Virus record (IMG/VR): IMGVR_UViG_3300028666_000022
Location: 248,001-312,000 of that record
Length of the DNA stretch: 64,000 nt
Strand: one strand, 5' to 3'
A model generated the notes under the pieces. The model saw nothing but the letters and a program-made list of their open reading frames with translations. It made no database searches and was not told the origin of the DNA. Within the stretch, counting starts at the first letter, position 1; each line of letters starts with the position of its first letter. The position numbers and the translations under genes were made by a program. Positions 1-43,019 of this stretch are shown one piece after another.

Positions 1-681
1 ATTTCCTCGATATAGTCTTGATGTTATTAAATTGCTATCAATAACAAATTCACTTTTACATATATTACAATAAAAATGCACAACACCATTATCACGTTTA
101 ATAAATTTTAATGTATCATCATTAATTCTGTTTAACATACGTTTTAGATTGAATTCATCTCCACTTAAAACTAATTGTTTTCTATTATCAATAACTGATT
201 GAATTTTCATTGGACTATCAACACCATAATTATTAAATAATGTATTATTAAATTTTTCTCTAATTTCCTTAGATTGTAAAGGACTTTCAACTCCATAATT
301 TTTAAGTGTAGTTTGCTTTTTCTTTTCTTTAACAGAATCTAATTGGTTATGGCTCTCAACACCATATTTATTCATATTACTATCTTTAATTTTTTCTTTA
401 TGTTCTTCTGAGGAATTTAAACAATTAATTGAACAATATTTACTATGTCCCTTATTAAGAGTATCGACAAATTTTACGTTATTACCACAATTTGGACATT
501 TAGGAACATCTTTTAAATCATTAATATAAAGATAAACTTTTTCTTTAAAAGGAATTGTTTTATCATTTGAATTTTCAATAATTGCAGTATATAACTCATT
601 ATGATTTTTACTAAGCCAATTTTCGGTTGTTTTAAATCCAGATTTATTGTCTTTTAAAAAGAAATCTTTTACATTTTCCAT
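1..681 (-). CDS. Zn-finger/KYGV-repeat homing-endonuclease-like protein, N-terminal part (runs off window start)
   Basis: Absent from the ORF track because it has no stop inside the window. Hand translation from ATG 681 gives MENVKDFFLKDNKSGFKTTENWL...PKCPNCGNNVKF...KYCSINC...KYGVESHNQ...KNYGVESPLQ, open to base 1. Same Zn unit as ORFs 1957 and 29435. Confidence 0.75.
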   Translation of the reverse strand, partial: MENVKDFFLKDNKSGFKTTENWLSKNHNELYTAIIENSNDKTIPFKEKVYLYINDLKDVPKCPNCGNNVKFVDTLNKGHSKYCSINCLNSSEEHKEKIKDSNMNKYGVESHNQLDSVKEKKKQTTLKNYGVESPLQSKEIREKFNNTLFNNYGVDSPMKIQSVIDNRKQLVLSGDEFNLKRMLNRINDDTLKFIKRDNGVVHFYCNICKSEFVIDSNLITSRLYRGN

Positions 682-5889: not shown

Positions 5890-6426
5890 ATGGCATATAG
5901 TAAAGAAAAATTAAAACCAAGTAATAATTTAGTAGAATTATTATCACCAATTGTTTTTAAAAATGTTAGAAGTACTTCTGAACATAAAACTAGTAGAGTA
6001 AGACAATGTTATGCATGTGGTAATAAAATAAATAAAAACGATAATTATATTAATCATCAATTTAAATATGATGGTAGAATAATTACAATATCTTTTTGTG
6101 TTGATTGTTTTAATGAAAATCAATTATTACCTAATGGAGATGAATTAATTACAAAAATTCATTTTGTTTCAAAAAACGAAAAAATTACTGTCATTAATAA
6201 GTATTCTATGAATAAAATAGATGATTTTATGAAAGAATTTCCTAGAAGAAATAAGTTGTATGAATGTACTCCTTCTGAACTAGCAATTTCTAAAGCAATA
6301 GAAGAAGTAGAAAAAATTGGTGCTCATGTTAAATTAACTGAAGTAATTATTAAATTAATTGAAGCAAGAGAATTAGTAAGTGATTTTACTGATGATACTT
6401 TAAAATTATGGAAAAGTTTAGAATAG
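5890..6426 (+). CDS. Hypothetical protein with CxxC...CxxC Zn-binding N-terminal half
   Basis: CYACG...CVDC; the second half (from MNKIDDF) may be a fused separate domain. Confidence 0.6.
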   Translation: MAYSKEKLKPSNNLVELLSPIVFKNVRSTSEHKTSRVRQCYACGNKINKNDNYINHQFKYDGRIITISFCVDCFNENQLLPNGDELITKIHFVSKNEKITVINKYSMNKIDDFMKEFPRRNKLYECTPSELAISKAIEEVEKIGAHVKLTEVIIKLIEARELVSDFTDDTLKLWKSLE

Positions 6427-6860
6427 TAGTAATTGAAACAACTAATGGTAAAGGTGAAACTAAAACCAGTTATAAGATTCAAAAAAAATTCTTATTTTGG
6501 TTTTTTGATTATAATATAATAACCCATTATTATACTAATACAAATTGGAATGCAATAAATGAGCCTACTCATATGGTATTTTTAACTAAAAGAATATTTA
6601 TTTTTAATACAATAACAAAAGCAACAGAATATTTAAATAAAATTCAAAATTCCTTTATTGAACAATATGATGGAGATAAGATAATCAGAGTTTTTGATGA
6701 TTATAATTGGACTGACACCTATATTAATAAAAGCTATTGGAGCATTGAAATAGATAGGCTTGGAATTAGTATAGGATATGAATATTCAAACAATCTTTCA
6801 AGTTTAAAAGAAATGATAGATGTTAGAAAAACTAAAACAAAAATTAATGTTGTAATATAA
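6408..6860 (+). CDS. Hypothetical protein
   Basis: ORF track; overlaps the upstream stop. Confidence 0.6.
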   Translation: MEKFRIVVIETTNGKGETKTSYKIQKKFLFWFFDYNIITHYYTNTNWNAINEPTHMVFLTKRIFIFNTITKATEYLNKIQNSFIEQYDGDKIIRVFDDYNWTDTYINKSYWSIEIDRLGISIGYEYSNNLSSLKEMIDVRKTKTKINVVI

Positions 6861-6899
6861 ATTTAAAAACTGTATATTTTTAATTAAAAATTAAATAAA

Positions 6900-7259
6900 A
6901 TGAAAAACAAAACTTTGATTACCCACTTAACCCGGCTTTGCTTATGTGCATTATTAGCGGGCGTTTGTTTTAGTTCATTTGGACAAAAGAAGATGTTTAT
7001 TGAATGTTATAATAACTTTGAAAATAAAAGAGTTTGTGATACGACTTATGAATATTTCCGTTCAGACACTTCTGTAATTCATATTATATACGCAGATAGT
7101 TTAGATATTATGAAATATTCAAAAGCAATAAAAGTGATTAGTGGTTATGGATATGAAGGATATTTTGATTTAGAAAATAACGTTCAAATTTTTATCCGAT
7201 ATAAAAATAAATGGCTTGAAATAAATAGAAGGCGTATTTGGAAAATTCAAACCGATTAA
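6900..7259 (+). CDS. Hypothetical exported protein (signal-peptide-like N-terminus)
   Basis: MKNK + hydrophobic LCLCALLAGVCFSSFG-Q. Confidence 0.55.
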   Translation: MKNKTLITHLTRLCLCALLAGVCFSSFGQKKMFIECYNNFENKRVCDTTYEYFRSDTSVIHIIYADSLDIMKYSKAIKVISGYGYEGYFDLENNVQIFIRYKNKWLEINRRRIWKIQTD

Positions 7260-7331
7260 TATTATTGGATACGAAATGTCCAATAACTTTTATATATAAG
7301 ATTTATTAAATAATAACAAAAAAACATTAAA

Positions 7332-7652
7332 ATGGAAAAAATAGATTTAAGGCGAGAATATATCGCAAAATTAAAAAAAGAAGGAGAAGTTAATGTACCA
7401 GAAGAATATTATTTAACTCGAAATCAGAACTATTCTGAATGGCTTGAACTAAAATTACTAATTGAAGTTGAATCAAAAAAAGGTTTGTTTGTAACAGATA
7501 AACAACCCGAAACTTTATTTAGGAATATTTTCGTTGACTTAATTGAAGAAATTGATATGGATGGAGAAAAAACGTTTTCACCTGTTGATTTTGAATATTA
7601 TGAAGAATATTTCAAAAGAGGAATAAAGTTATTAATGTGGCAAATTCATTAA
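7332..7652 (+). CDS. Hypothetical protein
   Basis: ORF track. Confidence 0.55.
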   Translation: MEKIDLRREYIAKLKKEGEVNVPEEYYLTRNQNYSEWLELKLLIEVESKKGLFVTDKQPETLFRNIFVDLIEEIDMDGEKTFSPVDFEYYEEYFKRGIKLLMWQIH

Positions 7653-8080: not shown

Positions 8081-9568
8081 TTATTTACAATCATCCTTCC
8101 ATATACTTTTCCCACAATCAAATATTTTATAATATTTTTTATCTTTACCTATTAGTTCCTTATTTATTCTTCTTTTCTTAACAACATATTTATAGTCGGG
8201 TTTAATATGTTTAATAAATCTAAAACCTAATTTAAGATATTGATTATCTTTAGAATATCTTCTATCATCGAAAGCAATTATTGAAGTTGATACATAGTTT
8301 GACTTAAAGTATTGATATAATTCAATTAGTTTATCTTCGTGATTTTCATTAAGTTTATCAGAAAAATATTGTAATTCATATTCATCATTTTCTATTGATT
8401 TAAAACACATAAGAGAAACTAAATCAGTATTATAGAATAGACCAATTCTAACATCACTTTTAATAGAATCACATAAAGAATTATTATATAGAAAATTATT
8501 TGCATCTATTTCACTAATAGGTTTAATATAGTAATTATTAATATTAGTGTTTTTAGTATTAAGATTCAATTTAGTTCTTATAATATTCTCGATTATTTCA
8601 TATTTTTCAATTAGTTCATCTTCAAAAAAATGTAATAATTCAATTCCTTTCTTTAAGCATTGTTCGGTTTTATTTAGATGATATTTTTTATCATGATATT
8701 TTTCACAGTGCCAATATAAACCATTAATTTCAATAGCTATTTTATATTTAGGAATGTAAATATCTAACTCACCCTTAATTGTTCTTCTATCGTTGGAAAT
8801 ATATTTAATATTATTTTCTTTTAAGAAATTACATATTTTTATTTCAAATGTAGTTCTAGGTGATCCTATTGGTAATAAAACAGTTGATATTTCAGTACCA
8901 TGATTTAATCTACTATTTAATAATTTTCTGTTGCCTTCAAATATATGACCATCTGGATGTTGAATTTTGAGATATTTATTATTAAACTCCAATATTATAT
9001 AACCCTTTTCTTTAAATTTTTCAACTAATACCTTATCTCTTTTTTGTTTTAATTTTAAATTATTATTTTCTACTACTTTCTTCCCTTTTTCACTTTTATA
9101 TGTTTTTCTAAGATTTATAAGTGCTTTTTCTCTTAATGAATCTACTTGAAAAGTGCTTTCTACACCATATTTCTTAAGATTAGCTTCTTTTGTTTTATTA
9201 ATTCTTGATTTTATATTTTCGGGTTTGGCTTGCCAAGATTTTCTACATTTTTCTGAACAGAATTTTCTTTTATGTTTTACTCTTTCTGAAAATACTTTAC
9301 CACAAACTAAACAAGTTCTTTTTTCTTTGGATTTATTTGTTCTCATTTTACCTGCACATTTATATGAGCAGCATTTTTTATCGTCTTTCTTTTTGGATGT
9401 AAATAATTTATTACAACATTCACAATGTTTTTCTATATAAAATATTTTATCTTTTTCTTTTCTGTGCTCAAGTTTACATTTTTTACAACAAAATAATTTT
9501 TCTCTTCCTTTAATTACAGTGAATGATTTATTACACTGTTGACAAACTAATTTAATTATTGTTGCCAT
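8081..9568 (-). CDS. Hef-like homing endonuclease: three short CxxC...CSxxC units + KYGV repeat + PD-(D/E)xK + GNAT-like domain
   Basis: Start moved to ATG 9568 (MATIIKLVCQQC); ELDIYIP...IEINGLYWH; paralogue of 1957-3336. Confidence 0.78.
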   Translation of the reverse strand: MATIIKLVCQQCNKSFTVIKGREKLFCCKKCKLEHRKEKDKIFYIEKHCECCNKLFTSKKKDDKKCCSYKCAGKMRTNKSKEKRTCLVCGKVFSERVKHKRKFCSEKCRKSWQAKPENIKSRINKTKEANLKKYGVESTFQVDSLREKALINLRKTYKSEKGKKVVENNNLKLKQKRDKVLVEKFKEKGYIILEFNNKYLKIQHPDGHIFEGNRKLLNSRLNHGTEISTVLLPIGSPRTTFEIKICNFLKENNIKYISNDRRTIKGELDIYIPKYKIAIEINGLYWHCEKYHDKKYHLNKTEQCLKKGIELLHFFEDELIEKYEIIENIIRTKLNLNTKNTNINNYYIKPISEIDANNFLYNNSLCDSIKSDVRIGLFYNTDLVSLMCFKSIENDEYELQYFSDKLNENHEDKLIELYQYFKSNYVSTSIIAFDDRRYSKDNQYLKLGFRFIKHIKPDYKYVVKKRRINKELIGKDKKYYKIFDCGKSIWKDDCK

Positions 9569-9598
9569 AATATGTTTAACATAAATAATACGAAATAA

Positions 9599-9627
9599 AA
9601 AAGCCACTAGATTATTTAGTGGCTTTT
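9599..9627. terminator. Intrinsic terminator after tail sheath (potentially bidirectional)
   Basis: Perfect 11-bp inverted repeat AAAAGCCACTA / TAGTGGCTTTT with 7-nt loop. Confidence 0.8.
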
Positions 9628-12706: not shown

Positions 12707-14857
12707 ATGAACAAATCTCAGAGGATTTACTTAAATACTGGAACTACAGAAACAGATAAATATATTAATGTTCAATTAGAACAAAATGTGGATACTCTTG
12801 AATTCATGTCAATGAGTATTTCCACAAAAGATGTGTATCAGAACACCAATGCCGATTACGGCCTGATCGTGGGAAAAATTTTAGCGAACGGACTTGTTGG
12901 TGTTCCTAATGCCAAGATCAGTATTTTCATTCCTTTAACTGATGAGGACTCCAACATAGGAGAAATTTTTTCGATCTACCCTTATAAAACCCCACGTGAT
13001 AAGAATAATGAAGGTAAAAGATATAATTTACTTCCTAGAGTTTCAAGAATTGATACAATCACAAAAATCGCAAGTCCTCGCCAACCTTTTGGTTCATTTC
13101 CAACTAAAGAAGAGGTTTTAACTAATGATACTATATTAACAGTATATAAAAAATATTATAAATATACAACAACAAGTAATAATGCTGGTGATTATATGAT
13201 TTTTGGAGTTCCAACTGGAACACAAACTGTTCATATGAGTATTGATATTACCGATATTGGAAAATATTCAATGACACCTGCAGCAATGGTTATTAATTTA
13301 GGTTATTCTCCCAATTTGTTTATGGATAATAATTCAAAAATAAAACCAAGTAATGATTTAGGTGATTTACCACATATTGAAACACAAGAAATTAGTGTAA
13401 ATGTCGTTCCTTTTTGGGGAGATAGCCAAAATTTTATTATTGGAATTACTCGTCAAGATTTTAGAATAAGATCTGTTTTAACAAACACTTTTACTATTTT
13501 TGGAAGTGCTTTTACTGACAGTGGTACTGATATGTGGGGATTTAACACAAATACCCTTAAGGAAATATATGAAATTAATAAAGATTTAAATGTAAAATCT
13601 AAAAGAATTGGTAAAGTAACCGAGCGAATTTATTATTATCCTTCAAATATTTCAGACGCAGATATTGATGCTGGATATATTGATTCAGATCAAATGTTAT
13701 TATTAGATCCCACAGAATATTCAGCATATAAAAGAGATGGTGATTTTGCTTTTATTATTTCATGTAATAGAAATAAAATTATTACTGATGATTTTGAAAA
13801 TGAAGTTCCTGTACCTGAAGATTCAATTAATGGAATATTTACAAAATTTAGAGGTTTTATGACATTGGAAATAACACCAGATGATCTCCCAATGAATTTT
13901 CATAATGATCAGTTTTATCCTTTAAGATATAAACTAAAATTCCCACAACATGCAGATAAAGGTCATACGTTTGCTAAACCAAGTGCTGATATTACTACTC
14001 CCGCACCTGCGCCAATACCGGGATTTCCAGCTAGTGTTGTTGATTATAAATTAAGAGATATTGATAATAAAAATTGGAGACAACAACATTATACATTTAC
14101 TGGTGGTCAATTATATAGTGTTTCAAGATTTCATAGTACCGTATTTAATAATCAAGATGATGTTAATGTGAATCAAAACACTATATTAAATGTTGGTTTT
14201 ACTGGTGGAGACAAAATAAATTCACCATATAAATTAGATCAGGTACATGATGTAGGTATAATTCAGGTTAGTGATAGTGTTGGAGTAACTGGTAATACTG
14301 CAAATAATGTTAAAATGGTAGGTAATACTGTTGGTGCTGATGGAAAAACAAAATTTTTTGGTGCTAACTGGTTAAATTTAAGTGTTCATTTACCCCAAGT
14401 AGCATATGATATTAATAAACAAGCCGAACAAGGTGGAGGTAAGGTAATTTCAAATAGTGATTTCACTAAAGATCTTTATTTCAATTATTATGTTCACGAT
14501 AATATTCAAGATATTGCTGCAGGAGATACAAATACTAAATTTTTTGCTAGATCAGATATAAACTGGACTGACTTTATTAATGTTCCAGTAAGTGATATTA
14601 GGGAAATGGCATTAGTGCCAAGTAAGGGATTTACAGATAAAGATTTAAATTTACCTAATGTTGGTTTAGATGGAATCACGAAAAAATACTATAGAAATGG
14701 GAATAATATTCCTATAAATTGGACAAATCCTTGTCCTGTTAATGGTGGTAAAACTAATGGTGATATAACATTAAGTGGTGATCCAAAAACTTATTTTTAT
14801 AGAGGTTTTGGCGATGCTGATTGTATACAATTTCTTTCTGAACTAGGTATTGTTTAA
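12707..14857 (+). CDS. Putative virion structural protein (baseplate/tail-associated)
   Basis: 716 aa, Gly/Asn/Thr-rich, next to the sheath, preceded by the late-type motif; function inferred from context only. Confidence 0.5.
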   Translation: MNKSQRIYLNTGTTETDKYINVQLEQNVDTLEFMSMSISTKDVYQNTNADYGLIVGKILANGLVGVPNAKISIFIPLTDEDSNIGEIFSIYPYKTPRDKNNEGKRYNLLPRVSRIDTITKIASPRQPFGSFPTKEEVLTNDTILTVYKKYYKYTTTSNNAGDYMIFGVPTGTQTVHMSIDITDIGKYSMTPAAMVINLGYSPNLFMDNNSKIKPSNDLGDLPHIETQEISVNVVPFWGDSQNFIIGITRQDFRIRSVLTNTFTIFGSAFTDSGTDMWGFNTNTLKEIYEINKDLNVKSKRIGKVTERIYYYPSNISDADIDAGYIDSDQMLLLDPTEYSAYKRDGDFAFIISCNRNKIITDDFENEVPVPEDSINGIFTKFRGFMTLEITPDDLPMNFHNDQFYPLRYKLKFPQHADKGHTFAKPSADITTPAPAPIPGFPASVVDYKLRDIDNKNWRQQHYTFTGGQLYSVSRFHSTVFNNQDDVNVNQNTILNVGFTGGDKINSPYKLDQVHDVGIIQVSDSVGVTGNTANNVKMVGNTVGADGKTKFFGANWLNLSVHLPQVAYDINKQAEQGGGKVISNSDFTKDLYFNYYVHDNIQDIAAGDTNTKFFARSDINWTDFINVPVSDIREMALVPSKGFTDKDLNLPNVGLDGITKKYYRNGNNIPINWTNPCPVNGGKTNGDITLSGDPKTYFYRGFGDADCIQFLSELGIV

Positions 14858-19542: not shown

Positions 19543-20016
19543 ATGAAAATATACATTAAATACCATAATCCTAAATGCAAGATTAAATCCTTCGGTAATT
19601 GGATTGATTTAAAATCTGCAGAATCAGTAGATTTAGAGAAATTAGAATTTAAATTAATATCTCTTGGAGTTTCCATGAAACTTCCCAAATTTTATCAAGC
19701 AAATATTGTACCTAGAAGTAGTACTTACATGAAATTTGGTATAATTCAAACCAATCATTATGGCGTTATAGATGGTCCAGATAATTATTCTGATGGTTAT
19801 TCAGGTAATGAAGATATTTGGAAATTCCCTGCTATTGCATTAAGAAATACTTCAATAATAGAAGGTGATAGAATTTGTCAGTTTGAAATAAAGCCAACAA
19901 TGCAAGCTCCTTGGTATATTAAATTAAGATGGTTATTCGACAATAAAATAAAATTCATTGAAGTTTTAGACTTAAAATCAAATAATCGTGGTGGTTTTGG
20001 AAGTAGTGGTAAATAA
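19543..20016 (+). CDS. dut: Trimeric dUTPase
   Basis: IDLKS, PRSS, GVID...Y.G, RICQF, C-terminal RGGFGSSG. Confidence 0.92.
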   Translation: MKIYIKYHNPKCKIKSFGNWIDLKSAESVDLEKLEFKLISLGVSMKLPKFYQANIVPRSSTYMKFGIIQTNHYGVIDGPDNYSDGYSGNEDIWKFPAIALRNTSIIEGDRICQFEIKPTMQAPWYIKLRWLFDNKIKFIEVLDLKSNNRGGFGSSGK

Positions 20017-20028
20017 AATAAATATATT

Positions 20029-20166
20029 ATGTTAATTGGTTTAATAATAGGATTTTTATTGGGTATTATCTTAGAAGAAATATTTTTAATTTATTTAATT
20101 AGATTTCTTAAAAAGAAAGGTTATATTAAGTTTGGTAAAAAAATTAAAAACATAAAATTTAAATAA
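20029..20166 (+). CDS. Small membrane protein (45 aa)
   Basis: Hand translation MLIGLIIGFLLGIILEEIFLIYLIRFLKKKG..., one TM plus basic tail. Confidence 0.5.
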   Translation: MLIGLIIGFLLGIILEEIFLIYLIRFLKKKGYIKFGKKIKNIKFK

Positions 20167-20167
20167 A

Positions 20168-20335
20168 ATGAAAAGATTTGTAATATCATTGTTATTATTC
20201 TTTTGGTTCATATTTACCATAATATCAGCATTATCAATAATTGGAATAATATTATTAGATTCTTGTTATGATAGTAATGGAGAAAGTATTTGGTTTGGAA
20301 TTGGTAATGATTTAAAAAATGAATTATTAAAATAA
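20168..20335 (+). CDS. Small membrane protein (55 aa)
   Basis: Hand translation MKRFVISLLLFFWFIFTIISALSIIGIILLDS... Confidence 0.5.
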   Translation: MKRFVISLLLFFWFIFTIISALSIIGIILLDSCYDSNGESIWFGIGNDLKNELLK

Positions 20336-20341
20336 GTTTTT

Positions 20342-21166
20342 ATGATAAAGATTGGTATAATTGGGCTTGGATTTGTTGGTAATGCTGTTTATTCTTTTTA
20401 TGGAGATAAAAACTTTAATATAATTAAATATGATATTCAAAGAGAAAAATCAGACTTTAATACATTAAATGATTTTTTGAATGAAAAACCTGAATATATT
20501 TTTCTTTGTGTGCCAACACCTGAAGTAAATCATAAGTCTAATTTTGGTATTATTGGTGATTTATTATTAGAAATTGAAGAATATTCAATTAGAAATAATC
20601 ATGAATTTAAGATTATTATTAAATCTACTGTATCACCAGAATTTTTAAAAACTTTAAAAACCAGAATAAATAATTCAATTTTAATTACATTTCCAGAATT
20701 TCTTTCTCAAAAAACTGCAGTAGAAGATTTTGAAAATAGTGAAATTTTAATATTTGGTTGCGAAAATCAAGTAGTTTTAGATAAAACAATATTTGATTTA
20801 TGTGTTGGATTTAGTAAATTAACTAAAGTTTATAAATTTTATGATATTGGAACACCAATGAAATTTAAATATGTTCATAATGTTATGGGAGCATTATCTA
20901 TTTTAATGTCAAATATTATGTTTGATTATATTAATGATGAACATATATATAGTATATTTAAAGAATTTTTAGTTAAAACTAATCATTTTACTGATACATA
21001 TTTAAATGTTCCCGGACATGATGGTAGTAGAGGATTTGGTGGAGCTTGTTTTCCTAAAGATTTGGTGAGTTTTATTGAACAAATATCTGTTGATGAAAAC
21101 ATAAGTACAGAAGAATTTGAATTCATTGCCAAAGCTAAAATATTAAATAATAAATTAAGAAAATGA
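20342..21166 (+). CDS. UDP-glucose/GDP-mannose dehydrogenase family protein (short form)
   Basis: IGIIGLGFVG, FLCVPTP, IIKSTV.P, PEFL, catalytic GFGGACFPKD; no C-terminal UDP-binding domain. Confidence 0.85.
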   Translation: MIKIGIIGLGFVGNAVYSFYGDKNFNIIKYDIQREKSDFNTLNDFLNEKPEYIFLCVPTPEVNHKSNFGIIGDLLLEIEEYSIRNNHEFKIIIKSTVSPEFLKTLKTRINNSILITFPEFLSQKTAVEDFENSEILIFGCENQVVLDKTIFDLCVGFSKLTKVYKFYDIGTPMKFKYVHNVMGALSILMSNIMFDYINDEHIYSIFKEFLVKTNHFTDTYLNVPGHDGSRGFGGACFPKDLVSFIEQISVDENISTEEFEFIAKAKILNNKLRK

Positions 21167-21390
21167 AAACATTAAATTTAATTCTAAAAATATTCTTTAT
21201 TAGAATAGTAAAGAAGGAAGAAAAAGTAATTGATAATCGTGAAATAATTTCATATGATTTAACAGTAGGTGGAATTTGTGAGAGAGGTTATGGTAATGTT
21301 AAAATAAATACTTATTATTTTATAGAATTTTTTATTAATCCACTTAACAATAAATCTATTGGTAAATTTAAAACATATAAAATAAATTAA
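21163..21390 (+). CDS. Hypothetical protein
   Basis: ORF track; ATGA overlap with upstream stop. Confidence 0.55.
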   Translation: MKTLNLILKIFFIRIVKKEEKVIDNREIISYDLTVGGICERGYGNVKINTYYFIEFFINPLNNKSIGKFKTYKIN

Positions 21391-21394
21391 TATA

Positions 21395-21760
21395 ATGAAA
21401 GATTTAAACAAAGTAAATGAAAATTGTATTCTTTTAAAAAGAAATGAATATGATAAATTGGTTGAAAAAGCTAATAGTTGTAAACCTAATGAAATAATCA
21501 TAAATTGGAATTGGTATAAAGGTTATGGGTATGTTGGTGGTTTTGATGCTAATTTAAATGTTTCGGGTAATGTTGAATTATCAAATAAAATATTTAGACA
21601 ATTACGTAATATTTGTAACATAATTAAATTAGAATACGATACAAAAATTGTAGAAAATTATAATACAATAAAGAAAAATGCTAAAATCGATGTTTTAGAA
21701 AATTTTTCTAGTTTACCTTGGTATAAAAGATTATTTTTTAATGAAAAATATATAAAATAA
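21395..21760 (+). CDS. Hypothetical protein
   Basis: ORF track. Confidence 0.6.
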   Translation: MKDLNKVNENCILLKRNEYDKLVEKANSCKPNEIIINWNWYKGYGYVGGFDANLNVSGNVELSNKIFRQLRNICNIIKLEYDTKIVENYNTIKKNAKIDVLENFSSLPWYKRLFFNEKYIK

Positions 21761-21762
21761 AT

Positions 21763-23283
21763 ATGAAATTAATTAAAGCCAGCACAGAAATTATTACACC
21801 AATAAATGGTGAAGAAATTCTAAAACAAATTGAACTTGCATCAAGAACCTGTTATCAATCAGAAGGAAAAATAGAATATGAAGATTATATTGACAATGAA
21901 ATTGAACCACCAATTGGAGTTTTAAATTATTACGCTAAATCTGCTCGTGTTTTAATACCCAAACTAATATCACGTGGTCACGAAGCTATGTTAGAATTTG
22001 GTGGTAATATTAGTGTTAAATTTATTTGTGATCGTGGCGTAAGTCATGAACTTGTTCGTCATAGAATTGCTAGTTTTGCTCAAGAAAGCACGAGATATGT
22101 ATCATCTTGTGAAAAAAGAAATATTTTAGAGTTTAATTGTGATAATGAAATTGATATTATTAATGCATATAATCAGGGATTTTCAATGCGAGAAATTTCA
22201 GAATATAGCTGTAACACAGAATGGGAAATTCGTAAAATTTTATTAAAAAATAATGTATCAATTAGAGGATTAAATAATAAAGGTAATAGATGTGAAAATT
22301 ATTTTTCTAATATAGATTCACATGAAAAGGCTTATTTATTAGGTTTAATTCAAACTGATGGCTCTGTTCGCCGTACTTCAAAAGGAAGTTCAAGTCTATG
22401 TATTACTCAACATAAAGATTATGCTTGGTATATTAAATTAATGTTTTCTATATTTAGTGAATATGTTGGTGAAAGTAATGATAGAAATTGTAAACAAATA
22501 GTAATTGGTTCTAAAAAAATTGTAAATGATTTAAATAATTTAGGAATAGTTCAAAATAAAACTGAAAAACAATCTGATAAAGACATAGATATAATGTGGA
22601 ATAGTATCCCCAAAGAATATCTTAATTCATTTATTAGGGGGTTAATTGATGGTGACGGATATGTTTGTTTTTTCAAACAAAAGAAAAGTATAAATGAAAG
22701 TTGTAATATTGGTTTTTGTTCCGTTAATGAGCATTTAATTGATATTCTTATTGATTTTATTAAAAATAATTTTGATTATTCATGTACTAAGTATAAAGAT
22801 AAAAATGTTTATAAATTTAGTATTACCAATTATAAAAAATCTATTTATATTGGTGAGTGGTTATTTAAAGATTTTAAATATCCCTTTGGACACCCCAAAA
22901 AATCTAGTGCTTGGATTAAAAGAATAAATAAACAATATCCAATAGCAGAATTTGGAGGGAATAAATTCATTATAATTAAACCATTGTGGTTAGATTCAAG
23001 TTCTCCAGAATCTATATTTAAGTATATTCATACTATGAATAATATTGAAGTAACATATGAAAAGTTAATATTAGGTGGTTGGTCACCTCAACAAGCTCGT
23101 AGTGTTCTTCCAAATTCTCTTAAAACAGAAATTAATGTTTCTTGTAATATTAGAGAATGGAGACATATTTTTAAACTTCGTTGTGCTAATGCTGCACATC
23201 CAGATATGCAATATTTAATGAGGCCACTATTAAAAGAATTTCAAAGTAGAATTCCAATTTTGTTTAATGATTTAAAATATTAA
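21763..23283 (+). CDS. thyX: Flavin-dependent thymidylate synthase ThyX carrying an in-frame HTH+LAGLIDADG insertion
   Basis: GHEAMLE, RGVSHELVRHRIASFAQESTRY, then about 280 foreign aa, then ARSVLPNSLKTEI...NIREWRHIFKLRC...AHPDM. Confidence 0.93.
   Translation: MKLIKASTEIITPINGEEILKQIELASRTCYQSEGKIEYEDYIDNEIEPPIGVLNYYAKSARVLIPKLISRGHEAMLEFGGNISVKFICDRGVSHELVRHRIASFAQESTRYVSSCEKRNILEFNCDNEIDIINAYNQGFSMREISEYSCNTEWEIRKILLKNNVSIRGLNNKGNRCENYFSNIDSHEKAYLLGLIQTDGSVRRTSKGSSSLCITQHKDYAWYIKLMFSIFSEYVGESNDRNCKQIVIGSKKIVNDLNNLGIVQNKTEKQSDKDIDIMWNSIPKEYLNSFIRGLIDGDGYVCFFKQKKSINESCNIGFCSVNEHLIDILIDFIKNNFDYSCTKYKDKNVYKFSITNYKKSIYIGEWLFKDFKYPFGHPKKSSAWIKRINKQYPIAEFGGNKFIIIKPLWLDSSSPESIFKYIHTMNNIEVTYEKLILGGWSPQQARSVLPNSLKTEINVSCNIREWRHIFKLRCANAAHPDMQYLMRPLLKEFQSRIPILFNDLKY
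22102..22935 (+). mobile_element. In-frame HTH + double-motif LAGLIDADG endonuclease insert without intein motifs (boundaries approximate)
   Basis: GFSMREISE HTH, AYLLGLIQTDGS, FIRGLIDGDGY; no intein block A, F or G. Confidence 0.72.
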
Positions 23284-23301
23284 TACTAAAACAACTTTAA
23301 T

Positions 23302-24426
23302 ATGAATAACCTAGAAAATGTAGAAATATTATCTAATGAAATAAAAGAAGTAATTGGAATAATTGTAAATAAATGTCCAGATGTTGTTTTCGGTGGATCA
23401 ATTGCATTAAATGCTGTTGGTTTAATCAATAGAAAAGTATCTGATATTGATATATTTGTTAGAGATAATAAATCCTTAACTAATGGTAATTTATTAGATG
23501 CAGGAATAATTGATGATGAGAGTTTATTGTCTGATACTGTAACAAACACCAATGGAAAAGAAATTCAACGTACTGGTGCTAAAATTAATGGTATAAAAAT
23601 CTGTATTTTTAAAGTTGATACTGAAGAATTACAACATTCAATATGTGAATTTTCTGGATTAAAAATTAAAATTCAAAATATTAATTATGCTATTCAAGCT
23701 AAATTATCATATAAGTTTAAAAATGAAAAACATAAAGATGATTTAGATGAAATATTTAAGGAAATTGATAAAATGTTAGAGAAAAAAGATTTAGATAAAA
23801 TACTTCTTAAAGGAGCATTTGTTGATGATAGAAAAGATGAAGAAGTACTTAATGATGAAAAATTAAATAATGATGAATATCTTTTTAAAGAAAATAATAA
23901 ATATATTATGAAAACATGGAATTATAACCCACCGTATGAAATCGTTTTTGGAACACAAGATGATTGGAATCAAACATTAGTAACAGCATTTAATAGTGTT
24001 ATTGAAGAAAATAATATACTCAATTTTCCAATTGAAATATATTCTCCAGAAAAATTTAGAAAAATATTTGAATCACTATATTATTATAACCCAAAAGATA
24101 ATACTCTTAGTAATAAATATATTGTTAAGTATGGAAGTAGTAATTTTCAAAACATTATTCTAATTAATAGCCAATATGAATTAGAAATACTTAACTATGT
24201 GGAAGAAAATAATGTTGAAACTAAATCAGATATTTTATTAGGTATTGAATATCTTATTAAGGAACGAGATGATGTAATAGATAGTTTTATTAATATCATC
24301 AAAAATAAATTATACTCGAAAGAATATTGTTTACAAGAATTGGATATTATTTTAGAATTTAATAAAAAAATTAAAATTCTTGAAGATACTTTAATATTTT
24401 TAAGAATAAAAAATAAAAACAATTAA
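23302..24426 (+). CDS. Nucleotidyltransferase-fold N-terminal domain fused to an unknown C-terminal region
   Basis: VFGGSIAL...RKVSDIDIFV matches hG[GS]x9-13DhD. Confidence 0.6.
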   Translation: MNNLENVEILSNEIKEVIGIIVNKCPDVVFGGSIALNAVGLINRKVSDIDIFVRDNKSLTNGNLLDAGIIDDESLLSDTVTNTNGKEIQRTGAKINGIKICIFKVDTEELQHSICEFSGLKIKIQNINYAIQAKLSYKFKNEKHKDDLDEIFKEIDKMLEKKDLDKILLKGAFVDDRKDEEVLNDEKLNNDEYLFKENNKYIMKTWNYNPPYEIVFGTQDDWNQTLVTAFNSVIEENNILNFPIEIYSPEKFRKIFESLYYYNPKDNTLSNKYIVKYGSSNFQNIILINSQYELEILNYVEENNVETKSDILLGIEYLIKERDDVIDSFINIIKNKLYSKEYCLQELDIILEFNKKIKILEDTLIFLRIKNKNN

Positions 24427-24427
24427 A

Positions 24428-24658
24428 ATGGAACACGAAGAAGGAGCAATATTATTAACACCACTAACTTCAGAAAAAGAATATGTATTTAAATCATTGG
24501 AAAATGATGAATATTTAATTAGTTTAATTAATTCACATAAAGAAAAATTATATGAAAGAAATATTGAAATATTTCATCAAGAAAATAATATATTAATAAC
24601 TGAAGAAGGCTATTATGTTGCAGTATATACCAAAAATTTAAGGAGTATTAATGAATAA
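24428..24658 (+). CDS. Hypothetical protein
   Basis: ORF track. Confidence 0.55.
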   Translation: MEHEEGAILLTPLTSEKEYVFKSLENDEYLISLINSHKEKLYERNIEIFHQENNILITEEGYYVAVYTKNLRSINE

Positions 24659-24690
24659 AACAAATAATTAAATATTTTTAATGATTCTAA

Positions 24691-24930
24691 ATGATAATAT
24701 TATATACAATAATAATTATTTTATTAGTTATTATTCTTTTACTTGCATTGGCATTATATATTTTTTCAAAAAAATCAATATTTTTATCTGAAAAAGAAAA
24801 AGAATATATTATCTTTGTTATTGATATATTTATACAATATGGTGATGATTTAGGTATTCAATCAAAAGAACAACATCTGAAATTAACCGAAGAACTTGAA
24901 AAAATTAAAAATAAACACTTAAATATATGA
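24691..24930 (+). CDS. Hypothetical single-pass membrane protein
   Basis: N-terminal hydrophobic helix. Confidence 0.6.
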   Translation: MIILYTIIIILLVIILLLALALYIFSKKSIFLSEKEKEYIIFVIDIFIQYGDDLGIQSKEQHLKLTEELEKIKNKHLNI

Positions 24931-25142
24931 AATTTCACGTAAATATATGGAACAAACAAGATAAGGAATATGTTATGTTAATTCTCACTGAAGAAGATAT
25001 TGAAAATGAAAGTAAGAAACATCTTGGTGCTGGTTATGAAATATTAATTTTACCATCAAAATATAAAGATGTTCATTCTCCATATTTAGATACAATTAGA
25101 ATGTTGTCTATTGCTAGATGTGGTGAAATTATTTACGTTTAA
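24927..25142 (+). CDS. Hypothetical protein
   Basis: ORF track. Confidence 0.5.
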   Translation: MKFHVNIWNKQDKEYVMLILTEEDIENESKKHLGAGYEILILPSKYKDVHSPYLDTIRMLSIARCGEIIYV

Positions 25143-29292: not shown

Positions 29293-29454
29293 ATGGGATA
29301 TTCAAAAGACAAAGACAGGACATTAGGCATAAGACTTGATGTAGATCTCAAAAAGAGATATTTAAAATTTATTAGTGATAATGGATATTCATTATCGAAA
29401 AGAATAAGAGTTTTATTGGAAAATGATATGAAAAATGAAAAAAACAGTATTTGA
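29293..29454 (+). CDS. Ribbon-helix-helix DNA-binding protein (53 aa, below track cut-off)
   Basis: Hand translation MGYSKDKDRTLGIRLDVDLKKRYLKFISDNGYSLSKRIRVLLENDMKNEKNSI*; alternating beta-strand, helix, G-x-S-x-S turn, helix. Overlaps the next gene by 20 nt. Confidence 0.7.
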   Translation: MGYSKDKDRTLGIRLDVDLKKRYLKFISDNGYSLSKRIRVLLENDMKNEKNSI

Positions 29455-30907
29455 TGACATTAGTAGTTTTACTAAGGAAGAACTGAAAATCTGGTTTAAC
29501 ACAGATAATATTGGTGGTCATAAATGTAGAGAAAATTTTATTTTTGAACATTATCCTGATTTACATAAAGAAATTCTTGAATATTCAAAAATAAACCCAG
29601 ATGTCATTAATTGGAAAGAAAAACTATTTAATTATTTAAATAATTTAATTGAAAATCCTAAATGTAAAAATTGTGGAAAAACTTTACATATTAGTACAAA
29701 ACATAAAAATTATCCAACATTTTGTTCAAAAGAATGTTATGATAAAAAACGAAATTTTAAACCAAAAAAAGAAAATATTGATATTAGTGCTTTTTCTAAA
29801 GAAGAATTAAAAGAATGGTTTTTATGTAATAATTATGGTGGGTATAAAACACGGGAAGATTGGCTTAAATTACACTATCCAATTCTTTTAGATAAAATAT
29901 TAAAAAATACTAATGAAATTAATTTAAAATTAAAGGCAAAAATTTATTTATATATTTATGATTTAAAAGAAAGTCCGAAATGTCAAGAATGTGGAAATAA
30001 ATGTAATTTTAGGGATCATTTAACAGAAGGTTTTACTAAATATTGTTGCAATAAATGTTCTCTTAAACAAAGTAGAAAATATAATGGGAAAAATAAAGTG
30101 AATATAGAAAATTATGCATCATTCTCTGATTTTATTATTAAGAATTATAAAAATGGTATGAGTTCAAACGAATGTTACATAAAAGAATCTAATCCAATTG
30201 AATATAATGAAATTATTAATCTACCAATTAACTTAAATAATATTCCTTGGAGAGAGAAATTATATAATTATACACATGGAATCATAGAAAGACCAATATG
30301 TCCTGAATGTGGTAAACCAGTGAAATTTAAAAATTTTAATAAGGGTTATAGAAAATTTTGTTCAAAAAAATGTCAAATAGTTTTTATTAATAATATAATA
30401 AGAAATAATTATAATATTATTATAGCTAAGAGAAAAGAAACTAATTTAAAAAAATATGGTGTTGAACATGCTGCGCAAAATAAAGAAATACAGGAAAAAA
30501 TACAACAAACTATAATTGAAAAGTATGGAGAAATTTATGCAAAATATATTCCAAAATATAATATTAATTCAATAATATATTTAGATATTTTAGCTGAAAA
30601 ATTAAATCTTCATATACAACATGCTTTAAATGGTGGGGAAAAAAGATTTATAAAATATTGGATTGATGGATATAGTGAAAAATATAATGTATGTATAGAA
30701 TGGAATGAAAAATATCATTACACAAAAAAGAATATCGAAAAAGATATAAAAAGAAATAAATTTTTAGTTGAAAATTTTAGGTGTAAGATGATTTATATTA
30801 AAGAAAAAGAATTTTTAAAAGATGTTGAGAAAAATATTGAGATATTATGTAATGAAATAAATGAATATATTAAAACTAAAACTGTTTTAGAACCCACTAA
30901 ATACTGA
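29435..30907 (+). CDS. Homing-endonuclease-like protein: three ~95-aa Zn units + KYGV repeat + Vsr-like PD-(D/E)xK domain
   Basis: Three P.C..CG...CS..C units; KYGVEH; GGEKRFIKYWIDGY...IEWNEKYH. Confidence 0.75.
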   Translation: MKKTVFDDISSFTKEELKIWFNTDNIGGHKCRENFIFEHYPDLHKEILEYSKINPDVINWKEKLFNYLNNLIENPKCKNCGKTLHISTKHKNYPTFCSKECYDKKRNFKPKKENIDISAFSKEELKEWFLCNNYGGYKTREDWLKLHYPILLDKILKNTNEINLKLKAKIYLYIYDLKESPKCQECGNKCNFRDHLTEGFTKYCCNKCSLKQSRKYNGKNKVNIENYASFSDFIIKNYKNGMSSNECYIKESNPIEYNEIINLPINLNNIPWREKLYNYTHGIIERPICPECGKPVKFKNFNKGYRKFCSKKCQIVFINNIIRNNYNIIIAKRKETNLKKYGVEHAAQNKEIQEKIQQTIIEKYGEIYAKYIPKYNINSIIYLDILAEKLNLHIQHALNGGEKRFIKYWIDGYSEKYNVCIEWNEKYHYTKKNIEKDIKRNKFLVENFRCKMIYIKEKEFLKDVEKNIEILCNEINEYIKTKTVLEPTKY

Positions 30908-40181: not shown

Positions 40182-40452
40182 AATATATGAAATTATGAAT
40201 AAATTAAAAAATTTCTATGAAAATTATTTAGAATATTATTTTTTCGTATTCAAAATATATTTAAAACTATTTTTAATATCAGCATCAGGATTTTTTATTT
40301 TACAAGGAATAGCTTCATTTTTATTATTTTATGAACAAATATATTCAGAAGAAATAAATTTTAATAATTTAATGATTGGTCCTACTATTTTTGGAATTAT
40401 GATTTGTTTTATTTTTGGAATGCAAATACATCGTTATAATAAATTGAATTAA
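40171..40452 (+). CDS. Hypothetical two-TM membrane protein
   Basis: Two hydrophobic segments. Confidence 0.55.
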   Translation: MEYKIYEIMNKLKNFYENYLEYYFFVFKIYLKLFLISASGFFILQGIASFLLFYEQIYSEEINFNNLMIGPTIFGIMICFIFGMQIHRYNKLN

Positions 40453-43019
40453 TGATACACAAACCCACCAAAGAACAAGAAAAAATATTTACTTATATTG
40501 AAAAACGACCTGAAAATCTATTAATTGAAGCATACGCCGGAGCTGGGAAAAGTTCCACTGTTGTTGAAGCAGTTAGGTTATTACCTAAAGATAAGTCAAT
40601 AACATTTTTAGCTTTTAATAAACACATTCAAGAAGAATTAAAAACTAAATTACCTGAACATGTGAGGTGTTATACAACATATGGTTTAGGAAATGCAGCA
40701 ATTAAAAGAAAATATGGTGATAAGATAGTGTTCGATGAATTCAAAGCAGACAAAATAATTCAAAAGAAAGCTAAAAATTGGGATTTAAATAACGAATTTA
40801 AAAATGAAGAGAAAATAAATTATTATCTAAATAATATAAAAAAATTAGTTAATCTCTGTAGATTAACATTAACAGTAAAGCCAGATTACATACCGTTTTT
40901 AGCTGAAAGACATGATATCAATAATTTAAGTAAACCAAAAGATATTAAAAGAGTTCTAAAAGTACTAGATGAAATGACTATAGATAGAACTTCTTATGAT
41001 TATACCGATATGGTTTATTTACCAGCAGTTGATAATTCAATTTGGATGTTTCCTCAAGATTATGTAATCGTGGATGAATGTTTACCAAAAGAAACATATA
41101 TTTTAACAACAGAAGGTAAAATACAAATAAATTTATTGTGTACTAATTATAATAAAAATATAAAAATACCTAATGTTATTACATATAATGAAACTATAAA
41201 TAAATTTGAAGAAAAGAAAATAAATTGTGTTTGGTGTAATGGGATTAAGGATGTTTATTGTGTTAAATTAGGCACTAAAAGAAAATTGTATGCTACAGTT
41301 AATCATAAATTTTTAACATTAAATGGATGGAAAAGATTAGATGAACTAAAAATTGGAGATGCTATACTATCGAATTATCATAATCAACCATATCATTCGA
41401 TATTAAATAATATACAAAAAGAAATTTTTGTTGGTTCAATTCTTGGTGATGGACATTTATATAGTTTAAGTAAAAATATAGGAAGAATTAGTGTTATTCA
41501 TGGTGAAAAACAAAAGAAATATATTGAATGGAAAGGACAATTTTTTAATTCTAAAATAAATAAAATTGAAAAAAATGGTTATAGTCAAAAGGTTGCATAT
41601 ACTTTTCGAACATTAGGATATTATTTTGATTTAAATATCGAAGATAGTATAAAATCAATAACTCCACAATCATTAGCAATTGCTTGGATGGATGATGCTA
41701 ATTTAAGTAAATTTGAAAATTGTTCAAAATTATATTCATTGGCTACAACAAAAAACTATGTCCAATTATTAAATAAAACAATATTTAATAATTGGAATAT
41801 CGAATCTAGTGTTAGAACACAAAAAAGTTCATCAACAAAAAAAGAATATTATTATTTAGAATTTAATAAAAAAAATACCGAAAAAATATCTGAATTAATT
41901 TCACCGTATATTCATGAATCAATGAAATATAAAATTTTAAAAAAACATTATAATAATATTAATAATGAAAATTGGAATATTATTGATGATAAATACTCAA
42001 ATTTAGGTTGTATTGTTGTTACTGATGAATATAAATTTCATAAAACCGAAAAAACATATGACATGAGTGTTGAGGATAATCATAATTTTATTATTACTTC
42101 GAAAAAAGATAGTAAAAATAGAGGTGGAGCGAGTAATAATGGAATTGTTGCACATAATTGTCAGGATACTGGGTCAGCACAACAAAAAATAATTGAAAAA
42201 ATATTAAAAAAAGATAAATTAACTGGTAAAATTTTAGGTAGATTAATCTCGGTGGGTGATAAATTTCAAAACATATATGCATTTAATGGTAGTAGTGATA
42301 AATGTTTTGAATGGTTCAGAAATTTTCCTAATACAAAAGTTTTACCTCTTTCATATTCTTTTAGGTGCGCCAAAAACATCATTTTAAAAGCAAATGAAAT
42401 TGTACCAGATATTAAAGCATTGGATGATGCACCTGATGGTATTGTTAGAGATGGTGATGTATTAAGTGAAGCTCAGAGTGGTGATTTTGTTTTATGTAGA
42501 ACAACAATGCCATTGGTTAAATTATTTTTTCAATTCTTATTACAACATAAAAAAGCAATTATTAAAGGCAGTGATATTGGAGTGCATCTTATTGAATTAA
42601 TTGGTAAAATTAATAATATTAAACAATTAATTAGTTTTTGGGAAAAAGAATTAGATGATTATAGTAATGATTTAAAATCAAAAGGTATTTTAAATCCAGA
42701 TGAACATAGTGGTTACATTGCTTTAGCTGATAAAGTTTCAACATTATTATTTCTAGCTAAACTTTCAAATAGTATCGAAGATCTTAAAGATAAAATAAGA
42801 ACAATATTTAGTGATGAAATTGAGGGTATTGTGCTCAGTTCTATCCACAAAATCAAGGGGTTAGAGTCAAATAGAGTATTTATTGTTAGACCAGATTTAT
42901 TACCGTTAAAAACTGCAAGAGGATGGCAAAAAGATCAGGAAATGAATTTATCATATGTCTCAATAACGAGGGCCAAATTAGAATTAATTTATGATAGAGA
43001 ATGGTCAGATTTAAAATAA
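40452..43019 (+). CDS. SF1 (UvrD/Rep-like) helicase with intein
   Basis: AYAGAGKS, LAFNK, VIVDE|CQD, SVGD..Q.IYAF.G, LSYSFRC, SSIHKIKGLE, YVSITRAK. Confidence 0.92.
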   Translation: MIHKPTKEQEKIFTYIEKRPENLLIEAYAGAGKSSTVVEAVRLLPKDKSITFLAFNKHIQEELKTKLPEHVRCYTTYGLGNAAIKRKYGDKIVFDEFKADKIIQKKAKNWDLNNEFKNEEKINYYLNNIKKLVNLCRLTLTVKPDYIPFLAERHDINNLSKPKDIKRVLKVLDEMTIDRTSYDYTDMVYLPAVDNSIWMFPQDYVIVDECLPKETYILTTEGKIQINLLCTNYNKNIKIPNVITYNETINKFEEKKINCVWCNGIKDVYCVKLGTKRKLYATVNHKFLTLNGWKRLDELKIGDAILSNYHNQPYHSILNNIQKEIFVGSILGDGHLYSLSKNIGRISVIHGEKQKKYIEWKGQFFNSKINKIEKNGYSQKVAYTFRTLGYYFDLNIEDSIKSITPQSLAIAWMDDANLSKFENCSKLYSLATTKNYVQLLNKTIFNNWNIESSVRTQKSSSTKKEYYYLEFNKKNTEKISELISPYIHESMKYKILKKHYNNINNENWNIIDDKYSNLGCIVVTDEYKFHKTEKTYDMSVEDNHNFIITSKKDSKNRGGASNNGIVAHNCQDTGSAQQKIIEKILKKDKLTGKILGRLISVGDKFQNIYAFNGSSDKCFEWFRNFPNTKVLPLSYSFRCAKNIILKANEIVPDIKALDDAPDGIVRDGDVLSEAQSGDFVLCRTTMPLVKLFFQFLLQHKKAIIKGSDIGVHLIELIGKINNIKQLISFWEKELDDYSNDLKSKGILNPDEHSGYIALADKVSTLLFLAKLSNSIEDLKDKIRTIFSDEIEGIVLSSIHKIKGLESNRVFIVRPDLLPLKTARGWQKDQEMNLSYVSITRAKLELIYDREWSDLK
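41079..42158 (+). mobile_element. Intein (360 aa) with LAGLIDADG endonuclease, inserted in Walker B
   Basis: N-terminal CLPKETYILTTEG, GSILGDG / AWMDDA, YDMSVEDNHNF, GIVAHN followed by +1 Cys. Confidence 0.93.

Follow-up and report, generated by a model that had tools for sequence, protein, structure and literature searches.

A LAGLIDADG homing endonuclease carried in frame, with no intein or intron around it, in the thyX gene of a jumbo phage

In this study, we examined an over-long thyX gene within a 64,000-nucleotide stretch of phage DNA (hereafter the window; positions 248,001 to 312,000 of IMG/VR record IMGVR_UViG_3300028666_000022), all coordinates below being those of the window. The open reading frame at 21763..23283 (+), stop codon included, encodes a 506-aa protein without an internal stop under table 11, and is the only thymidylate synthase gene in the 339,898-bp phage record, in which we found one ThyX locus and no ThyA. 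In line with the preliminary description, which had noted a whole LAGLIDADG endonuclease in frame within ThyX, we confirmed that ThyX residues 1-112 and 395-506 are separated by a 282-aa insert (V113-I394; 22099..22944 (+), 846 nt). The N-terminal part of ThyX (21763..22098 (+)) ends with the ThyX motif RHRIASFAQESTRY, in which Y112 corresponds to T. maritima Tyr91, and the C-terminal part (22945..23280 (+)) resumes with AEFGGNKFIIIKP...ARSVLP...REWRH...AHP. Pfam Thy1 matches in two stretches, with profile positions 11-96 lying before the insert and 97-190 after it (residues 402-498), and TIGR02170 scores 99.1 bits against a cut-off of 87.9. The boundaries were set by comparison with insert-free (empty) alleles, namely FP_oengus (STRY/CNYSKEKF, the slash marking the insertion point), the empty locus L005 (STRF/CNYTDDKF) and the spliced LR756500.1 sequence, and carry a one-residue ambiguity.

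The insert is a helix-turn-helix (HTH) region followed by a two-motif LAGLIDADG endonuclease. The HTH region (22147..22248 (+), aa about 129-162, AYNQGFSMREISEY...ILLKNNV) comprises three helices in the structural model (129-138, 142-147 and 153-162), consistent with matches of HTH families in homologs and with HTH hits in a PDB profile search. The single-chain endonuclease core (22309..22938 (+), aa 183-392) contains motif 1, AYLLGLIQTDG (22330..22362 (+), aa 190-200), with catalytic Asp199, and motif 2, FIRGLIDGDG (22630..22659 (+), aa 290-299), with catalytic Asp298. LAGLIDADG_3 (PF14528; E 6.9e-09) and Hom_end match between the two Thy1 stretches, and LAGLIDADG_3 matches in 59/59 homologs. 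The arrangement is not due to chance, since in DNA of about 22% GC roughly 9% of random codons would be stops, so that 282 open codons must be coding. It is also not an assembly artefact, as contigs from four other rhizosphere metagenomes span both junctions with 0 differences; in these data only the occupied form was seen, at 3-5x word depth and with no joints indicative of an empty allele. Three other large nuclease-containing ORFs in the window (47776..49686, 8081..9607 and 29435..30907) were examined as possible further in-frame inserts, but are free-standing multi-domain endonucleases.

The preliminary description reported neither intein nor intron signatures, and both statements hold. 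No Hint/intein family was detectable in this insert or in 58 homologous inserts: at E<=1 no Hint, Intein_splicing or Hom_end_hint match was found in this protein or among the 25 most-shared families for the 59 homologous inserts, while the same library identified Intein_splicing in the two true inteins of the window (1.3e-15 and 6.1e-05). A PDB profile search hit only intron-type or free-standing LAGLIDADG enzymes and HTH proteins. Structurally, the LAGLIDADG core fills aa 183-392 and leaves 2 residues on its C-terminal side and 70 residues (an HTH) on its N-terminal side, so there is no room for a Hint fold, which would be expected to need roughly 130 aa. The junction residues are V113 (Val in 118/120) and I394/A395, with a variable next position (N/D/S/E), so there is no Cys/Ser1, terminal Asn or +1 nucleophile; empty alleles have Cys at the equivalent +1 position, but carriers have Ala. 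An Rfam scan of 20000..25000 at E<=10 found no group I or II intron family, whereas the same method picked up a group I core (Intron_gpI, E 0.0054) next to a homologous endonuclease gene in phage PR1, and the insert contains neither a stop codon nor non-coding sequence. The junctions read TAT/GTA...ATA/GCA, and although a one-base shift gives a terminal G, it then places a G at -1. The GT...AG-like ends that the same shift produces follow from the Val and Ala codons and mean nothing in a phage of bacteria. No inverted repeats bring the junctions together, and a 17-nt direct repeat encoding EFGGN (21993 and 22947) follows from the same five residues occurring twice and is judged coincidental.

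To assess whether ThyX could fold around the insert, we predicted the structure of the whole protein with AlphaFold2 (pLDDT 93.9, pTM 0.89). The predicted ThyX fold is complete across the insert, with Z 18.6-19.7 to solved ThyX over about 200 residues spanning model residues 1..506 (Z 19.7 over 202 aa to 3gwc; rmsd 1.9 A over 193 of 218 residues of T. maritima ThyX). A separate domain is predicted to emerge one residue after the active-site Tyr, and structural alignment (VIA-align) matched its residues 183-392 to I-DmoI (Z 16.9), I-Tsp061I (Z 16.9) and E-DreI (Z 17.5). Nevertheless, the insertion point is close to the substrate pocket and the subunit interfaces of a tetrameric enzyme, and tolerance of a 282-aa domain there is not obvious.

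The architecture is widespread. At least 120 protein clusters at 90% identity, including Crassvirales, carry it at the same site, with 40-61% identity and full coverage. D199 is kept in 119/120 and D298 in 120/120 homologs. Likewise, the ThyX motif and catalytic residues (RHR, H73, E78, H100, S109, R111, Y112, E429, Y432, R446 and R473) are invariant in 83 diverged carriers. Insert and extein identities are decoupled, the two trees conflict across a 97* branch, and AU tests reject congruence (p = 0.00014 and 0.0035), although the groups tested were named after the trees had been seen. In sister pairs, insert branches are 2-7 times shorter than extein branches, indicating an insert younger than its host genes, part of which signal could be mimicked by stronger purifying selection on the insert than on ThyX. 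The closest ThyX backbones are empty (L005) or carry a different element, and empty alleles also occur within Crassvirales. A scan of viral contigs with the C-terminal ThyX part returned only 5 loci, which supplied empty and intein-bearing alleles but no close empty twin, the nearest empty backbones being about 58-65% identical. From these data we conclude that the element moves horizontally between phage ThyX genes. Regarding its origin, free-standing HTH+LAGLIDADG homologs of 250-330 aa cover the insert end to end, beginning about 10 aa before the HTH and ending about 10 aa after the conserved C-terminal helix, and homologs in cultured phages sit between split DNA polymerase or gyrA genes.

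Taken together, we favor, with moderate confidence, the explanation that a LAGLIDADG homing endonuclease gene of the free-standing or intron-borne HTH+LAGLIDADG type has lost its own start and stop codons and sits in frame in the surface loop that follows the ThyX active-site motif (S-x-R-Y). It would be translated from the thyX start codon as an internal domain and is most likely not removed, although no RNA or protein data were available to exclude an unknown removal route. We infer that the two ThyX halves fold together around it, so that the enzyme keeps working while the endonuclease domain projects from the loop. The endonuclease would cut insert-free thyX alleles at the conserved STRY/CNYSK coding sequence, its own allele being protected because the insert splits that site, and repair from the occupied allele during mixed infection would then copy the insert across. 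Such homing, for which our evidence is indirect, would explain the spread of the insert among unrelated phage ThyX genes, and residence within the reading frame of a useful enzyme would also protect the element from frameshift and nonsense decay. This agrees with the first of two alternatives in the preliminary description, an endonuclease persisting as a permanent domain in a tolerant ThyX loop, and the computational checks proposed there came out as predicted. However, "permanent" is not quite right given the horizontal mobility of the insert, and the strategy, there proposed to be distinct from introns, inteins and free-standing genes, is not wholly without precedent.

Other explanations appear less likely to us. 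Removal after translation, by Hint-independent protein splicing or by proteolytic excision leaving two ThyX fragments that re-associate, is unlikely, although the insert sits in a conserved active-site motif, which is where inteins sit, and a true HNH intein lies only 4 codons upstream in relatives. V113 (118/120), S115 (108/120) and A395 (98/120) at the junctions are strongly conserved, as is the loop F371-P374-G376-H377-P378-K380, whose role is unknown, and mitochondrial intron LAGLIDADG proteins may be translated as exon fusions and then proteolytically processed. On the other hand, there is no Hint fold and no room for one, no conserved nucleophile or Asn is present at the C-terminal junction, the C-terminal linker is not conserved in one of the insert clades (clade B), and the model shows a folded two-domain protein with high confidence. 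Removal at the RNA level, by a cryptic self-splicing intron or by ribosomal bypassing (which, with removal by non-canonical splicing, formed the second alternative of the preliminary description), seems very unlikely, and nothing in the sequence supports it, although it could not be excluded without RNA or protein data. Homologous endonucleases in cultured phages do lie in intervening sequences of DNA polymerase and gyrA genes, one of them behind a weak group I match, and the 5' exon ends in U, but this U and a terminal G cannot both hold with the same boundary. Further, an intron would not need to stay open and in frame with the 3' exon, yet all 120 or more carriers do, and known bypass gaps are probably of the order of tens of nucleotides (50 nt in T4 gene 60) rather than 846 nt.

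It is also conceivable, though improbable, that the insert is a domesticated domain, inherited vertically and kept because it benefits the enzyme or the phage, for example by tethering dTMP synthesis to DNA or acting as a regulatory module. The insert is more conserved than ThyX itself, the high pTM suggests a defined orientation between the domains, and some insert and extein subclades co-diverge (for example the carriers P0025/42/45 and P0043/48); WhiA may serve as a precedent for a domesticated LAGLIDADG+HTH protein. This is in contrast to the incongruent trees, the patchy distribution and the essentially invariant catalytic Asp residues, which domesticated proteins such as WhiA appear to have lost. 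Inactivation of ThyX, which would leave the gene as an expression platform for the endonuclease in a phage relying on the thymidylate synthase of its host, is more doubtful still. The insertion lies next to the active site and phage ThyX is often dispensable, but catalytic and motif residues are invariant in the 83 carriers although their exteins have diverged to 36-60% identity, including co-diverging carrier clades, which argues for continued selection on ThyX while it is occupied. In addition, the ThyX fold is predicted intact, and the downstream ThyX half stays in frame in every carrier.

A homing endonuclease is generally accepted to sit inside a coding sequence only if an intron or intein removes it. 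Here, a full-size endonuclease appears to be tolerated as an internal domain next to the active site of an enzyme, and has spread through many unrelated phage lineages, including jumbo myoviruses and crAss-like gut phages. We regard it as about as likely as not that in-frame, non-splicing domain insertion represents a fourth general lifestyle of homing endonuclease genes, beside introns, inteins and free-standing genes, in which the ThyX-LAGLIDADG fusion would be a stable bifunctional enzyme whose nuclease domain homes while the ThyX tetramer stays active. A still bolder variant is that the conserved junction residues and the F-x-Y-P-F-G-H-P-K-K loop mediate a new, Hint-independent way of removing the domain. 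If confirmed, the favored explanation would add a way for selfish nucleases to persist by borrowing the translation signals of the host gene, would explain a class of over-long ThyX annotations in metagenomes, and would provide a natural example of a tolerated domain insertion for protein engineering, as well as a large new set of LAGLIDADG enzymes with a predictable target. It would further show the ThyX motif to be a hot spot shared by two different elements only 4 codons apart.

Although no paper linking ThyX with a LAGLIDADG insert was found in the literature searched, which did not cover subscription journals, related systems are known. Among the closest is the ShiLan domain of actinophage DNA methylases (Arsenault, Gosselin and Gogarten 2025, PMC11855218; first noted in PMC9957025), which likewise reads in frame with its host gene without stops, shows the evolutionary pattern of an actively homing element, has no detectable intein or intron features and is proposed to remain in the host protein as an extra structure. 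In ShiLan, however, the HNH endonuclease is encoded out of frame and needs separate translation, the in-frame product is a small hairpin-like filler, and the host methylase is dispensable. Here, the endonuclease is itself the in-frame domain, predicted to be well folded, and sits in the only thymidylate synthase of the phage; the only other-frame ORFs of 50 aa or more listed in the region are short, one of them (22739..22927, 62 aa) lying inside the insert. In mitochondria of Ophiostomatales, rps3 is fused in frame to a LAGLIDADG endonuclease coding sequence (PMC7902536, citing Gibb and Hausner 2005), and mitochondrial intron LAGLIDADG ORFs are fused to the upstream exon, so that the endonuclease is expressed without its own start codon and without an intein. 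Those organellar fusions appear to be terminal, or to end in a stop inside an intron, with the displaced host segment duplicated, whereas in the phage gene the endonuclease is internal, host sequence resumes in frame on the far side, and nothing is duplicated. Inteins with LAGLIDADG endonuclease domains, such as PI-SceI, PI-PfuI and the two in the window, are also horizontally spread in-frame inserts in a conserved active-site motif of an essential-type enzyme, contain a LAGLIDADG_3/Hom_end-type endonuclease and have empty alleles, but the ThyX insert lacks their Hint domain, terminal nucleophiles and terminal Asn, and its endonuclease is related to free-standing or intron-type enzymes with an N-terminal HTH rather than to intein endonucleases. 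Finally, the free-standing and intron-encoded HTH+LAGLIDADG endonucleases of phages, for example the ORFs between split DNA polymerase genes of Providencia phage PR1 and Alicyclobacillus phage MMB025 and between the gyrA pieces of Bacillus phage Goe21, share the protein family and domain order over the whole insert at 25-38% identity, but have their own start and stop codons and lie in non-coding intervening sequence, while the ThyX insert has neither and is part of the host protein.

The locus lies within bases 248001-312000 of a 339,898-bp virus record with direct terminal repeats, from a phage that is present in several rhizosphere metagenomes. This stretch encodes a T4-type major capsid protein, a tail sheath and a prohead protease, and the GC content is about 22%. 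The Gp23-type major capsid protein (51272..52945, -) is 557 aa long and matches the Pfam and PHROG models in two stretches, the best of which starts only at about aa 272, so that its N-terminal half may hold extra sequence. Two very large ORFs, at 56639..61264 (+) and 12707..14857 (+) and of 1541 aa and 716 aa, have no Pfam match, and the 716-aa ORF has no PHROG match either. Interestingly, the window is unusually dense in selfish nucleases, as in addition to two inteins it holds three large free-standing multi-domain homing-endonuclease genes, at 8081..9607 (-), 29435..30907 (+) and 47776..49686 (+) (phrog_3339/559/314, with Vsr-like, YacG zinc-finger plus REase-like, and GIY-YIG domains).

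We found ORF 21763..23283 (+) to be open for 506 codons under table 11. Pfam Thy1 matches this protein in two pieces, with profile positions 11-96 upstream and 97-190 downstream, so the break in ThyX is clean, and TIGR02170 thyX scores above its curated cut-off. Between the two pieces are LAGLIDADG_3 and Hom_end matches as well as a weak HTH match. Alignment with insert-free ThyX proteins, namely those of FP_oengus (...QESTRY CNYSKEKFEGSITVVEP) and of the empty relative L005 (...STRF CNYTDDKF) together with the spliced LR756500.1 protein, places the insert at V113..I394, which is 282 aa (nt 22099..22944), with a one-residue ambiguity. In 22%-GC DNA about one random codon in eleven is a stop, so an open stretch of 282 codons must be coding. 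Further, contigs from four other metagenomes cross both junctions without a single difference, so the insert is not an assembly artefact. A 17-nt direct repeat (15/17 identical) encoding EFGGN is found at 21993..22009, in the ThyX N-terminal part (aa 78-82), and at 22947..22963, immediately after the insert (aa 396-400). Although it directly abuts the 3′ junction, it is probably a coincidence of the same five residues.

The insert is not an intein. Pfam and NCBIfam find no Hint-type family in the protein, and none appears among the 25 most-shared families for 59 homologous inserts scanned with 10 flanking residues at E<=1. By contrast, the same library finds Intein_splicing in the two real inteins of this window, which had been noted in the preliminary description and are confirmed by Pfam: one in a UvrD-like helicase (40452..43019, +), with Intein_splicing plus LAGLIDADG_2 (aa about 241-548), and one in a prohead core protease (Peptidase_S77; 54637..56544, -; intein at aa about 111-484). 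A profile of the 59 inserts searched against all PDB sequences hits I-Tsp061I, I-DmoI, I-CreI and small HTH proteins, but no intein. In the AlphaFold2 model the LAGLIDADG core occupies residues 183-392, leaving a three-helix HTH region on the N-terminal side and two residues on the C-terminal side, and there is no space for a splicing domain. The junction residues are Val (118/120) at the start and Ile/Ala at the end, followed by a variable residue, and no nucleophile or terminal Asn is present. Nor is it an intron: an Rfam scan in E-value mode over 20000..25000 finds no intron family at E<=10. As a control, the same scan finds a full-length but sub-threshold Intron_gpI match (25.6 bits, E 0.0054) at 365..629 of the Providencia phage PR1 locus (L010), between the first DNA polymerase piece and a LAGLIDADG ORF homologous to the ThyX insert, which suggests an intron in a DNA polymerase gene that the record annotates as separate CDSs. 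The junctions of the ThyX insert (TAT|GTA ... ATA|GCA) cannot give both a U at -1 and a terminal G. More tellingly, an intron has no need to remain open and in frame with the downstream exon, yet every one of the 120 or more carriers does.

Structurally, AlphaFold2 with an 83-row alignment gives a mean pLDDT of 93.9 and a pTM of 0.89. VIA-align finds solved ThyX structures first, with M. tuberculosis 3gwc at Z 19.7 over 202 aligned residues and T. maritima 1o26 at Z 18.6 (rmsd 1.9 A, over 193 of 218 residues), both alignments spanning model residues 1..506. The two ThyX halves are therefore predicted to assemble into a complete ThyX fold around the insert. Next come E-DreI, I-Tsp061I and I-DmoI at Z 16.9-17.5 over residues 183-392. 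Y112 corresponds to T. maritima Tyr91, as inferred from the shared S-x-R-Y motif and the alignments, so the insert leaves the enzyme one residue after an active-site residue, in the short loop before the next strand.

A search of 5.8 billion proteins returned, among its best 120 clusters, only proteins with the same architecture at the same site, which are 40-61% identical, mostly at 80-100% query coverage, and 306-612 aa long (mostly 470-600 aa). They include records named Crassvirales sp. and a carrier (6001..7647) on a 258,855-bp contig of GCA_046989605.1 (L013), labelled as a Phocaeicola massiliensis MAG. The neighbours of this gene are phage-style nucleotide-metabolism genes (NrdD, dUTPase, DNA ligase) with a DDE transposase next door, and it could be a prophage or a mis-binned jumbo phage. 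None of 50,697 deposited phage genomes carries the arrangement. In an 83-sequence alignment all ThyX catalytic residues (H73, E78, H100, S109, R111, Y112, E429, Y432, R446 and R473) are invariant, and the catalytic Asp residues of the two LAGLIDADG motifs are kept in 119/120 and 120/120. The phage has no ThyA and no second ThyX. Within the insert, the loop F-K-Y-P-F-G-H-P-K-K (aa 369-380 of the query protein, P0001; window about 22867..22902) is almost invariant in ThyX-embedded inserts (F371, P374, G376, H377, P378, K380), while the equivalent stretch in free-standing homologs reads x-x-L-x-R-K-K. It may be an adaptation to the embedded state, or a DNA contact.

Identity to the query is decoupled between the two parts of the protein. 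Homologs numbered P0003-P0088 have inserts 50-66% identical (nearly all 56-66%) but ThyX parts only 36-55% identical, while most of P0089-P0121 have inserts 35-47% identical but ThyX parts 46-60% identical. The insert tree has two main clades, A (44 rows, support 100) and B (23 rows). The ThyX tree separates a long-form ThyX clade (35 rows, all carrying A inserts) by a 97-supported branch from the short-form ThyX genes, which carry B inserts, an empty allele, and also the A inserts of P0001 and P0003-P0006. AU tests reject forcing the 35 long-form carriers together on the insert data (p 0.00014) and forcing P0003/P0004/P0018 together on the ThyX data (p 0.0035), although these groups were chosen after seeing the trees. 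In sister pairs the insert path is 2-7 times shorter than the ThyX path. The nearest ThyX backbones to this phage are empty (L005) or carry a different element, and within crAss-like phages both empty and occupied alleles exist. Together, this is the pattern of an element that homes between alleles, not of a vertically inherited domain. Interestingly, the closest ThyX relatives, L003 (LR756500.1, 1501..3219) and L008 (1717..3327), carry a genuine intein with an HNH-type endonuclease region (CVTG...(I/T)HN|STRY), inserted between E and S of QESTRY, only 4 codons upstream of the LAGLIDADG insertion point. Two unrelated selfish elements therefore target the same ThyX motif.

To discern the origin of the insert, we searched 1.84 billion cluster representatives with the insert alone, which gave 8,847 hits. 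After about 30 ThyX-embedded proteins come free-standing proteins of 250-330 aa at 27-38% identity, which cover the insert from just before the HTH to just after the last helix. Homologs in cultured phages are separate ORFs lying between the halves of split DNA polymerase or gyrA genes. The insert is therefore a whole endonuclease of the free-standing or intron type that lost its start and stop codons, and it is not a decayed intein.

The finding is real, and the main interpretation of the preliminary description, that the endonuclease persists as a domain in a tolerant loop of ThyX, is supported. In the mechanism we propose, the endonuclease is made by translating thyX and stays in the protein as an excursion from the post-motif loop, both its retention in the mature protein and the activity of ThyX being inferred. 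It would recognise and cut the uninterrupted STRY|CNYSK coding sequence of empty alleles, and repair from the occupied allele would copy it across; cleavage and homing are likewise inferred. Its position in the frame of a useful enzyme would mean that frameshifts and stops in the endonuclease are selected against.

We found no paper describing a ThyX-LAGLIDADG insert, in a literature search that did not cover subscription journals, and we regard the element as a homing endonuclease gene with an unusual, little-documented way of residing in a host gene. In Ophiostomatales mitochondria, rps3 is sometimes fused in frame to a LAGLIDADG endonuclease. The nearest published case is the ShiLan domain of actinophage methylases, which is also an in-frame, stop-free, apparently homing insert without intein or intron features; however, its HNH endonuclease lies in another frame and its in-frame product is only a small filler.
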